Below the pieces are notes generated by a model that had not been told where the DNA came from, searched no databases, and saw only the letters and a program-made list of their open reading frames with translations. The position numbers and the translations under genes are program-made. DNA of 63,967 nt, filler included, from Hyphochytrium catenoides (lineage: Eukaryota > Protista > Hyphochytriomycota), in NCBI GenBank assembly GCA_900088475.1. It is 11 parts of 11 records of this genome, joined end to end, with 100 filler letters (N's around TTAATTAATTAA, not from the genome) between each part and the next. Parts side by side here need not be neighbours in the genome. Positions count along the whole stretch, not along the records: positions 37,032 to 40,889 come from FLMG01003508.1; 10 more parts are not named here. One strand, written 5' to 3'. Of this stretch, positions 36,481 to 40,989 are shown piece after piece; positions within the stretch are counted from its first letter, which is position 1, and each line of letters opens with the position of its first letter.

Positions 36481-37231
36481 GTCAAGCGAGCGATAGGGGA
36501 GATAAAGCGAGTCACTCCCACCATGCCTCTCTCCTGTTGGAGAGATGGTACTCCCGGTAGCCCTGCTCCGCCTTCGCTCTCTTCTCTTCTTCTTTCTCTC
36601 TCTTTCTCTTCCCCCAGGAGAGACCCACGCCCTGGCCAAGCAGCGGACGGCGGATGGCCGGAGACAGAGCTCGGAAGGGGCTCAGTCCAAGCATTTGAGA
36701 AAAGAGAGAGCGAGAGACAAACAGAAAAGAAGAGAGAGAGACACCACCGAAGAGCAGCTTCTACTGTTTATATAGTGAATGTATGGGAATGGAGCAGTGG
36801 TCCAATGGAGAGAAGAACTTGGTGTGGGGCCGCCTAACGAGGGAGGAAGAAGCCAGGCAGCAGGGAAGAAAGCCTCCAGATGAAGAGCGGAAGTGCTGTC
36901 TGTTTGCTTTTGTCTCTCTCTCTCTCTCTCTNNNNNNNNNNNNNNNNNNNNNNNNNNNNNNNNNNNNNNNNNNNNTTAATTAATTAANNNNNNNNNNNNN
37001 NNNNNNNNNNNNNNNNNNNNNNNNNNNNNNNACTGCCTACCATCCACCCACTGCGTTTATAAAGAACAAAAGGTGCTTAGTACAGAGAGAGCAGTGGGGA
37101 GAAGGGCTGAGACGATCAGAGAGGGTTTAATGTAGATATAGCTCCTGGTAGGGGCAAGGAATGAGAAATGCGTTGTAGGTTAGACTGATAGGCTTACTAT
37201 CCTAAAGCGGTCCTAGAGGTAAGAGTGGCAA

Positions 37232-38962
37232 TTACACTTTTGCCAGAGTTTTATTCTTGGAAACGAAGGAAATGTGCTCGAACTCCATAGCCTTATTGTT
37301 GGCCTCCTCCTTGGGCTGCGGTCCAGGAATCACCAGCTATAGCGATGCAATAAGCTGCAGTTAGTCTTCGCGGAGAATAAGGTCTAAGTTAACGTAAAAT
37401 CAAAGCTAGAAGGCCGACAAAACCGAACTCGTCGACTGAAAGGGGAACCGCAGCGAGGACGCAGAGTTAAGCGTTTTACCGTGGCGCTCTTTTGAATCAC
37501 TGCTAGGGCCGTGACGGCCAATCCATCTTCAACAGCAGGAAGGAGGACCCGATCGTCCGCACTTAAGCTTTCCATAGAGTAAAATGTTACCATAGCGGTT
37601 AGGGGGAATCAGATCCTGTAACTTGGGTCCATAATCCGCTTTACCTCTTGGCTAGTGCACTAGCCTTAGCCATAGCTTCTCCCTGACTGATTGTTTGTAC
37701 CTTCTTGCCGCCAGAGTACAAGGTAACAAAGGGGCTGTCGGGGTTAATCTTGACCTGATCTGCATACTGCAGCTCATCGTTGATAAGAAAGAAGTCGGAA
37801 TACTTGTAGATCCCTATTGCCAAAAACCGAACATGCAGAAGGAGATGCGCGTGAGGAAGGGAGACAGAACTGAGAGAATAGCTGTTACATAGTACCCCTA
37901 TTTAGGGAGAAGTGACTCGTCGTGTTAGCCTCGTTAGGACTGAACAATAGAGGGGGAGAGAGGAGGCGATCTAGGAGCAAGAAACTGCGGTTACCAGGGA
38001 TATCCTCTATGTGAGCGCCGGTGGTGAAAACGAATCTCAGTTTTGGATAGGTTCCTGACGATAGGAAACGTGATTGCAGGTGGGCTGGATAGTACGTTCA
38101 GTCTTGTCAGATTAGCGCTATTCCATGGCCCCTTCATGCCTGTTAACTAGCTTGCCTGATTCAATTTCTGGGATGAGCTCGGCAATCTCGTGGGAGAGGG
38201 TCTCCCCACTCTTAAGCGAAGGGTCATAGATGAAGAGCGCAGCCTTGGAATCCTCTAGCGCAGAGCTAAAAGAAGAGTGTCAAGCCCCCTTTTTATGGCA
38301 AAGGTAGGGTAGGGTTGAAGGAATAGACCATAGACGTACGAGATATGATTGATGTCAGAGTCCTTTGGAGACATAGCCGCAACATGGAGTCCACCCCTGG
38401 CCGCCGCAAGCTGAGTGACCACCTGGGCGCACAGTCGAATGTCAGAAAGTGGGTTTATAGAGCTTGAAGAGGATCGCTTCTTCTTACATTCTCTGCGCTA
38501 TTTGGTAGCAATGTAGCCACGACATCTCCTGGCCGAATGCCCATATCGAACCAGCCATTGACCAGGCCATCTGCGTATTTCTAGAAGATGTTGGCATCGC
38601 CTTAGTACTGGCATGGAAGTGAGATGTAGAACCACATTGATCTTCTACCTTGATGTCCTTATAGGTCAGCCGATAGTCCTGCTCCATGTCTCTAATTGCC
38701 TCTTTCATAGGTAAGTCGTCTACGGACTTGTGTAAGGCCTGCGTCACCGTCGATGCGTGACGGACGACCCCTTTCAGCAAGCCATAAGTCAATAACTCCA
38801 ATTCTAGAGCAAGAGAAGGGGGATCATTCTTCTTGAGCTTACCGACTGGCGCCAACGCCCTTCGGAGTCCTGGCATATACACACGAATTAGTCTTCTCGT
38901 CCAGATCTACGCACCTCTCAGCGCCACTTACCATTCGACCTGCTCAGAGCTCTGATCATCAT
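37232..38962 (-). CDS. Truncated AMP-binding (acyl-CoA synthetase-like) protein, ~305 aa, 10 exons, with mitochondrial presequence
   Basis: Spliced: MMIRALSRSNGLRRALAPVGVVRHAST..LPMKEAIRDMEQDYRLTYKDIKKYADGLVNGWFDMGIRPGDVVATLLPNSAENVVTQLAAARGGL..YPKLRFVFTTG..DSPFVTLYSGGKKVQTISQ..LSADDRVLL..KSATLVIPGP..LAKV*. Confidence 0.78.
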
Positions 38963-39905
38963 TCTGCCTAATGACACTGTTAGACTAAATAAGTCTAATG
39001 ATCCTGGAAATAGCTGGTGAGTCCTACAGTATAGGAAACGAGTATGGCCCCTGCTCAGTCACTCGGGCCTGTGTTGAGGTGGAGCTCCAATGATCTCTAT
39101 CTGAGCTCTCTCTGAAGCTCTATCTGCATTGTAACTCTATGGCGCCCAAGCTGCAGTCAGACGGCCAGATCCGCCACATAAATTCATCTATCACAAATAA
39201 CATGACATCTCGGTGTTTTATGAAATATATGAAGAACCTTATTCTCGATCATCTGTACTAGGAAAGTCTTGCTATCACAGATCTGAACAACGCGCTTCAG
39301 AATGCTAATAGCCGTTAGCCGCTTTAGGGTTTCACAACATCCGTTCTAAGGCTGGCCTGTGGTAAATAATAAGAACGGAAACGCCATTTGATCCGAGACA
39401 GAGGTTCCAGAGATAGCGGCAGAGCAAGGTAGAGTAGCGCTAGATGTACCGGAAGATGATGAGGCATATGTCGCAGCATGCGAGACAGAGGAGGCAGAGT
39501 CTTCACCACATCCCTCTCTGGCTCCAATGCCAAAAAAGTTGCTGCACAGAGCTTCGAAGCTCCATCAGACGGAAGATCATTGCGGCTTGTGAGGAGATCA
39601 CCTTATCAGGGCCTAGTTAGAACAACCCTCGACAGAGAGGGATCTGTAACATCTCGCAGATTGCGCCGTGGACGCTTGAAAGGTAGGTGAAGTGGCGCTT
39701 CGAAATATGGCTGCGTGGTTTAACAGTTCTCTGTCTCAAGAGCGCCGCGTAGGTCGTCATCCTGGATTCCAAAAAAGCGAAGACTTGGCCCTCACCTCTG
39801 TCGTCTAGAGGTAAGTCCATTGCTTTGTCTACCTATCGTGACATATCAGTAAAAGAAGACTATTTGCTATATTCAGGAGACGCAGTAGGGTCTGAGGAGG
39901 GTGAG

Positions 39906-40706
39906 ATGGCTAACAGGGCAAGGAAAAAGCCCGTCGCAGGAACGTCTTCAAAGTTAGAGTACCAACATCTGGACAATGAGGTAACCCTCTGAAATACATT
40001 GGATCTAGCTTCTCTTAACTCTCGTATTGCGCAGCCTGAGGATAATGGCCGCAACGACCTTGACAAGGAGATGGAGCTTCGACAGGTCAGGCGGAGGTTT
40101 GCCTACTAGCAGTTTTTGGTAGAAGCTGACGTTACATCTGTATCTTCGTCTGTGCAGCTGGAGATGCAAAAGCAAGACCAGTCGCTCGACGTGCTTCATG
40201 ATTCTGTGCAAAGACTTGGGCACATGAGCGTCACTATCGGGAATGAACTGGACACTCAGAACAAGTATGTTCCCGCTTACTTTTAGCCTCGTTATCGTCA
40301 GGACGTCGCACTAAAGAGAGCCCTACAGAATGCTGGAGGAGCTGAATGCGGACGTAGACGAAGCGAAGAATGCGCTGGACTACGTGACGAAGCAGACCCA
40401 ACAGCTCATCAAGAAATCAGGTACGAGGACCAGGAACCGTTTTAGATTTCCAAACTCTGCAATGACCTTTCTCTTTCTTTGCTCTTTCTGATCCACCATT
40501 CCTATGCGTCCACGCGTCCGCTCTTTCACCTCCTTCTTGTTGCCCTTTCTAAGATGCTTCTTAGCCTTTCAAGCTGTTACTTTTGAGTACTTAGTCTTAC
40601 GCCTTCTTCATTCTTCCTGCTCGCAGGGGGCTTCAAGTGGTTCAGCGTCATCTTGACGTTGACTGCTATCCTGGTTGTTCTTATCTTCTTGGTTATTTAC
40701 ACTTAG
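39906..40706 (+). CDS. Qc-SNARE (syntaxin-6/8-like t-SNARE) with C-terminal TM anchor, 5 exons
   Basis: QKQDQSLDVLHDSVQRLGHMSVTIGNELDTQNKMLEELNADVD..LIKKSGGFKWFSVILTLTAILVVLIFLVIYT*. An in-frame upstream exon (39478-39681) could extend the N-terminus. Confidence 0.85.
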
Positions 40707-40989
40707 TTGGGCAGGGGAGACTCAAAAAAACAAAGAGTGGAAAGAGTGCACTGGGATATCTTCCACTCGTTTTATTTATATCACCTCAGTCTCTCAGACA
40801 CGAGAGAGGAGACCTTTAAAGCAATCAATGGCATACTCTACGTCCTCCTGGGACACATTTAAGTTCGTTACAGCTCTCACTCGCCCATTNNNNNNNNNNN
40901 NNNNNNNNNNNNNNNNNNNNNNNNNNNNNNNNNTTAATTAATTAANNNNNNNNNNNNNNNNNNNNNNNNNNNNNNNNNNNNNNNNNNNN

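Follow-up and report, generated by a model that had tools for sequence, protein, structure and literature searches.

A very diverged ANL-like gene with a shortened P-loop and an apparent end beside an assembly break, in Hyphochytrium catenoides

The Hyphochytrium catenoides DNA analyzed here contains, on its minus strand, a genuine ANL-like nuclear gene with the many introns of an intron-rich eukaryote. It encodes a very diverged derivative of the ANL (acyl-CoA synthetase/adenylate-forming) superfamily and is under purifying selection. Our preferred reading, to which we give a probability of roughly 45%, is that the TAA codon at 37232 would be the true stop and the product a short pseudoenzyme. 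The analysis was confined to the piece at positions 37032–40889, part of record FLMG01003508.1; positions are those of the window, that is, the whole stretch of 63,967 nucleotides presented. This piece is eukaryotic DNA of ~48% G+C and bears two genes, the ANL-like gene (-) and a SNARE-like gene (+).

The ANL-like gene, located at 37232–38962 (-), has an intact spliced frame of nine exons comprising 960 nt and 319 amino acids, as established by three-frame reading and phase bookkeeping (Table 1). The coding sequence extends from the ATG at 38962 to the TAA at 37234–37232, and the exon phases agree throughout. An in-frame stop lies 33 codons 5' of this ATG, which is the first ATG after that stop. 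The introns, seven GT-AG and one GC-AG, are 62–181 nt long. All of the peptides quoted in the earlier note of this gene were found on the minus strand where it had placed them. It had also described ten exons and ~305 amino acids; the intact frame is borne out, but the tenth exon requires an in-frame mini-intron of 39 nt at 38842–38804. This mini-intron is doubtful, because all 13 accepted introns of the piece, which form our reference set, are longer (54–206 nt). Three variants of one sequencing run fall inside it (38810, 38833 and 38837), all of them non-synonymous by manual codon reading if the region is coding; they would fit either an intron or a fast-evolving presequence.

Table 1. Features of the ANL-like gene and of the adjoining left edge of the piece
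Feature	Positions	Strand	Remarks
Exon 1	38932..38962	(-)	Start codon and first 10 codons, basic N-terminus; donor ATG/GTAAGT, leave-one-out PWM score 8.5
Exon 2	38649..38869	(-)	Remaining basic N-terminus, RHA-ST site, ...RLTYKDIK; weak collinear hhalign match, FadD 23-55
Optional mini-intron, 39 nt, GTAAGC...CTCTAG	38804..38842	(-)	In-frame; belongs to the 10-exon model; doubtful
Exon 3, GIRPGDVVATLLPNSAE	38488..38580	(-)	Sole exon with significant ANL similarity
Exon 4, VVTQLAAARGGLHVAAMSP...	38340..38422	(-)	Weak hhalign match, FadD 89-106, adjoining the exon 3 match; phase-consistent
Exon 5	38156..38265	(-)	Followed by the GC-AG intron (donor GCAAGC); exon end conserved in L001; no significant ANL match
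Exon 6, ..LRFVFTTGAHIEDIPG	37995..38054	(-)	Conserved in L001 (TTGAHIEKAPG); flanking introns do not align
Exon 7	37645..37813	(-)	Spans the P-loop surroundings; weak, reproducible hhalign mapping to FadD 188-233; conserved in L001
Shortened P-loop remnant YSGGKKVQ	37695..37718	(-)	Gap of ~5 residues relative to YTSGTTGxPKGV
Exon 8, LSADDRVLLPAVEDGLAV...KSAT	37480..37567	(-)	Start conserved in L001 (LKVDDRILLPDVED); ANL-like by eye only (xDxxLxxxPLFHxxG position), not significant
Exon 9, stop TAA 37234-37232	37232..37336	(-)	Top coding score of the gene's exons, 0.51 bits per codon
Intron-like element, 53 nt, GTAAGCC...CTAAC...CCTACCAG	37145..37197	(-)	Starts 35 nt after the stop; donor 7.3, acceptor 7.2
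Candidate further exon, ..IKPSLIVSALLPTALSVLS..	37060..37143	(-)	28 open codons; reachable only via the weak phase-2 donor 37235
Left edge of the piece	37032..37056	.	Assembly break, not a genome end

Comparisons with ANL proteins were made exon by exon. Exon 3 aligned with residues 57–87 of FadD with a hhalign probability of 88.9% and an E value of 2.4e-6, the target being a home-made alignment profile of seven E. coli ANL enzymes. The same exon matched the Pfam AMP-binding family (PF00501) at profile positions 40–58 with an E value of 0.03 and a score of 13.6 bits, below the cut-off of 29.9, and 13 of its 17 weak matches in the PDB are ANL enzymes at the equivalent position; of the eight exons searched against the PDB, it alone retrieved ANL enzymes. 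Among the nine exon pieces submitted to Pfam, exon 3 alone gave a weak AMP-binding match, and no single exon reached the gathering score. The best local hhalign matches of exons 2, 4 and 7 (Table 1) are each non-significant; they are contiguous and collinear with that of exon 3, and their spacing agrees with the lengths of exons 5 and 6. Exons 5, 6, 8 and 9 individually showed no significant ANL similarity in Pfam, the PDB, the home-made HMM or hhalign. Visual inspection does place them along the ANL pattern (DS.A.L...D; D..L...P....GL; ..ATLV....). A phmmer search of 1.84 billion cluster representatives with exon 7, the P-loop exon, found no ANL protein at E <= 0.001, and adding the metagenomic relative described below as extra alignment rows brought no gain in the hhalign mapping. 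PDB matches of exons to VopV and to phosphoglycerate kinase were discarded as chance or repeat matches. The ANL pattern previously called clear is therefore significant in exon 3 and weak and collinear in exons 2, 4 and 7, with nothing significant in exons 5, 6, 8 and 9. On these profile matches we accept ANL descent for a protein that is very diverged.

The protein resembles the ANL synthetases (among them E. coli FadD, EntE, plant 4CL and oxalate-CoA ligase) in its N-terminal A1/A2 region, Y[RK][ED][LI]...GI.PGD.VA...PN..E.....LA....G, and FadD in the collinear order of exons 2, 3, 4 and 7 along residues 23–233. In contrast to these enzymes, its P-loop (YSGGKK) lacks about five residues, VED stands at the A4 His/aromatic position, and the visible gene contains neither YGxTE, nor TGD, nor the C-terminal domain. 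The tandem ANL-like domains of DIP2 keep the ANL fold with decayed adenylation motifs. Proteins of this type are likewise ANL-derived and degenerate in their motifs, but they are complete ANL domains in large multidomain proteins rather than short proteins bearing a presequence.

The remnant YSGGKKVQ occupies the position of YTSGTTGxPKGV, where the hhalign alignment opens a gap of four to five residues, and the protein does not contain the A3 P-loop [ST]SG[ST]TGxPKG. The loop of the metagenomic relative, YSGGKKTQ, is equally short; together with the hhalign gap, this confirms the reduced ATP-binding loop recognized earlier. Because the Hyphochytrium gene has no intron at the P-loop, a hidden exon cannot restore it there, and since the relative has an intron after FYS, followed by GGKKTQT, the short loop is ancestral to both genes and is not a splicing artefact. 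Loss of catalysis is plausible from these motifs: canonical ATP binding would be lost, and the protein would be a binding or scaffolding pseudoenzyme rather than an adenylating enzyme. The former description of the protein as catalytically dead is accordingly plausible, the P-loop being both shortened and conserved in its short form.

The only relative found is P0003, encoded on L001, an ENA metagenome contig of 570 nt. It was the one true relative among six matches to exon 7 in the phmmer search of 1.84 billion cluster representatives; the other five (P0001, P0002, P0004, P0005 and P0006) were rejected as spurious, being long repeat proteins whose scores add up from many weak repeats. A word-index search with exon 7 yielded no candidates, the exon 7 alignment, scanned against JGI metagenomes, GTDB genomes and IMG/VR, yielded no confirmed relative, and exact look-ups for a longer contig with three mechanical ORFs of the window found none on record. 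The contig corresponds to the last part of exon 5 through the first part of exon 8, and over this span the exons align with those of the ANL-like gene and the introns do not. Over the 95 shared codons, the amino-acid identity is 63%, pS is 0.72 (saturated), dN is 0.25 and dN/dS is ~0.1. An extra phase-1 intron of 58 nt (340–397 of L001) interrupts the vestigial P-loop (FYS/GGKK) at the site equivalent to 37713–37712; it is absent from the Hyphochytrium gene, which implies an intron gain or loss separating the two taxa. The intron after exon 5 (38055–38155, -) is of the GC-AG type (CAG/GCAAGC), whereas the same junction in L001 has a GT donor.

Based on the dN/dS of ~0.1, the conserved short loop and the synonymous variants, the gene is constrained. 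By manual codon reading, both variants in exon 7 are at third codon positions and synonymous, as is one of the two variants in exon 9. Judged from such substitution patterns, the gene is functional and under purifying selection and is not a pseudogene. That it is maintained, as proposed before, accords with the low dN/dS over 95 codons and with the conservation of exons but not of introns, and the label of maintained pseudoenzyme appears reasonable.

The stop codon lies 200 nt from the edge of the piece at 37032. The piece is present in three DNA sequencing runs, all from one study, and none of the RNA runs contains it. Within every one of these DNA runs, two contigs extend past the ends of the piece and the unitigs break at 37057. 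The read contigs confirm the sequence and indicate that the genome carries on beyond both edges, so that the left edge is an assembly break. The DNA across the stop is identical in the contigs of the three runs, with no indels, and a homopolymer frameshift that would extend the frame near the stop was therefore rejected. No frame of the piece has a fragment that matches ANL profile positions beyond ~320, in a gene whose visible end is this close to the assembly break. The statement that the protein stops before YGxTE holds within the piece, where the stop is only 200 nt from the break. A gap-free reading of exon 9 against FadD places the end of the ORF near residue 309, within the N-domain rather than at a domain boundary.

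Splice sites were scored with a PWM built from the 13 accepted introns. The stop overlaps the donor-like sequences GTGTAA/GTAATT, whose scores are -1.1 and 0.1, compared with 1.3–10.5 for the 13 accepted donors (leave-one-out), and it looks like a phase-2 GTAA donor that has been read through ('xxG TAA'), as found at the internal donor of exon 7. Downstream of the stop, the donor at 37197 (score 7.3) ranks 7 of 195 GT dinucleotides, and the acceptor at 37144/37145 (score 7.2), which has a CTAAC branch sequence and a polypyrimidine tract, ranks 13 of 298 AG. The 53-nt element between them (37145–37197) is out of frame with exon 9, and would therefore be an intron of the 3'UTR or else belong to a neighbouring transcript. 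Alternative splicing through the strong donor at 37197 was rejected, as no such path keeps the frame open from exon 9. The only frame-compatible continuation passes from the donor at 37235 to the acceptor at 37144 and enters an open frame of 28 codons. Within this candidate exon the stretch VSALLPTALS resembles the ANL VT..L.VPT motif of EntE, with shuffle p values of 0.096 for the best match and 0.018 for the sum of the top three, this being one of five exons tested. The codon usage of the candidate exon is -0.43 bits per codon, compared with a mean of -0.65 for intron windows and a range of -0.09 to 0.76 for accepted exons. In our own reading, exon 9 itself has a copy of the VPT motif that is degenerate and correctly spaced (ISFVSKNKTLAKV). 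The outermost part of the piece has an ATG at 37040–37042 (-) directly before a good donor (ATG/GTAGGC, score 5.4); this arrangement resembles the short exon 1 of the ANL-like gene, and may mark where a downstream gene begins.

We regard a true stop and an incomplete gene model as having roughly even odds. If translation really ends at the TAA at 37232, the gene would make a stand-alone fragment of ~319 amino acids. This would take in the greater part of the ANL N-domain's alpha-beta-alpha-beta-alpha sandwich and lack both the beta-barrel and the C-terminal lid, and the 53-nt element after the stop would be a 3'UTR intron. The weak donors at the stop and the intron-like codon usage downstream make us lean to this reading. 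Against it stand the closeness of the stop to the assembly break, the cut at about FadD 309, which is not a domain boundary, the similarity of the stop to a read-through phase-2 GTAA donor such as that of exon 7, and the presence next to it of a strong acceptor with a CTAAC branch, behind which the frame is open and ANL VPT-like. Introns in 3'UTRs are uncommon; most exons of the gene individually lack significant ANL similarity; and we know of no stand-alone half-ANL protein that has been described.

The main rival, which we hold to be a serious possibility at somewhat less than an even chance, is a full-length diverged ANL gene whose exons for A5 (YGxTE), A7 (TGD) and the C-terminal domain lie beyond the break at 37032. 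The apparent stop would then be the start of a phase-2 intron (AAAGT/GTAATT), and fragmentation of the assembly would have produced the half enzyme as an artefact. Genes are often cut in assemblies of 4-kb contigs, which gives this reading a strong prior, and it agrees with an assembly break situated 200 nt from the stop, with the GTAA donor core that the stop overlaps, as at exon 7, and with a cut point inside the N-domain fold (FadD ~309). It also has a frame-compatible path available, from 37235 through the acceptor at 37144 (7.2, CTAAC branch) into 28 codons that include VSALLPTALS. However, all 13 accepted donors outscore the one at the stop, and the much stronger donor at 37197 lies within the proposed intron. 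The codon usage of the candidate exon is intron-like, its resemblance to ANL proteins is non-significant after five exons tested, and a degenerate, correctly spaced VPT copy already exists in exon 9. Furthermore, an intron extending past the edge must exceed 200 nt, as does one of the 13 introns here. The half length given in the earlier note is thus favored by the intrinsic signals (donor scores and codon usage), while the break, the intron-like element and the cut away from a domain boundary point the other way.

Should the gene run off the contig, it would encode an ANL-like protein that is diverged, restricted to its lineage and degenerate in its P-loop, of modest interest as an example of pseudoenzyme evolution, and would serve as a warning against the biological reading of truncations beside contig ends. 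The short pseudoenzyme that we prefer would, in contrast, be an unusual case of an ANL adenylation fold reduced to a fragment that selection retains in a non-enzymatic role, and a candidate for the kind of ANL-like module carried by complex I in Euglenozoa and ciliates.

The first 25 residues of the protein include seven R/K and no D/E, and the N-terminal hydrophobic moment is modest, at most 0.44. An N-terminus free of acidic residues as far as RHA-ST, as formerly described, applies to these 25 residues, but D26, E33 and E35 precede RHA-ST. This composition makes a mitochondrial presequence plausible, and the basic, acid-free segment would act as such. A more specific form of the short pseudoenzyme is a mitochondrion-targeted half-ANL scaffold of ~280 mature residues from a poorly sampled lineage, with a sandwich core lacking the beta-barrel and lid, a conserved vestigial P-loop and possibly a structural role as a subunit of a complex for respiration or fatty-acid handling; we consider this combination unlikely.

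The suggestion that the protein is a complex I subunit started from the premise that complex I of Tetrahymena and Euglena has an ANL-type accessory subunit, and this premise is well founded (PMC6018760, PMC10884005). NDTB17 of Euglena complex I is annotated as 'Adenylate forming domain, Class I', with a calculated mass of 53.3 kDa (PMC6018760). It has been identified with NDUEG1 and with NDUTT2 of Tetrahymena (PMC10884005), although one later paper equates NDUTT2 with NDUEG2 instead (PMC12854811). The FAS module of complex I that contains NDTB17/NDUEG1/NDUTT2 had no detectable enzymatic activity (PMC6018760, PMC10884005).

That the ANL-like protein is the equivalent of this accessory subunit of trypanosomes, Euglena and Tetrahymena appears to us very improbable. 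The existence of a subunit with a class I adenylate-forming domain, in a module that is enzymatically silent, fits the presequence-like N-terminus and degenerate P-loop of our protein, and both would be ANL-derived and presumably mitochondrial. These features are generic, however, and would suit any mitochondrial ANL-like protein, and a subunit of ~53 kDa (about 480 amino acids) differs in size from the 319-aa ORF. Eight exon-wise phmmer searches of 177,635 PDB sequences matched no complex I chain, short diverged exons giving such searches little power. Nothing found here ties the gene to that subunit, and a role in complex I is speculation.

Least credible of all is a decaying remnant, that is, a truncated ANL duplicate without function: although the protein is shorter than the family, degenerate in its motifs and almost without relatives, its frame is intact over nine exons with consistent phases, its exons have coding-like codon usage, and its dN/dS is ~0.1 with saturated synonymous sites, the degenerate loop itself being conserved.

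The second gene of the piece, at 39877–40706 (+) and possibly starting from ~39700, is a multi-exon gene divergent from the ANL-like gene and encodes a tail-anchored, Q-SNARE-like protein. Its heptad SNARE region is spread over two exons, one of which has a weak Pfam SNARE match (E 0.08), and the protein ends in a C-terminal transmembrane helix (..FKWFSVILTLTAILVVLIFLVIYT). Searches of the piece for repeats and Rfam families gave nothing relevant. Logan unitigs at 37057–37208, 38375–38697 and 39192–39382 have about half the depth and represent heterozygous bubbles. Comparison of the three runs with the piece revealed ~40 differing sites, and the organism or the sequenced population is thus markedly polymorphic.
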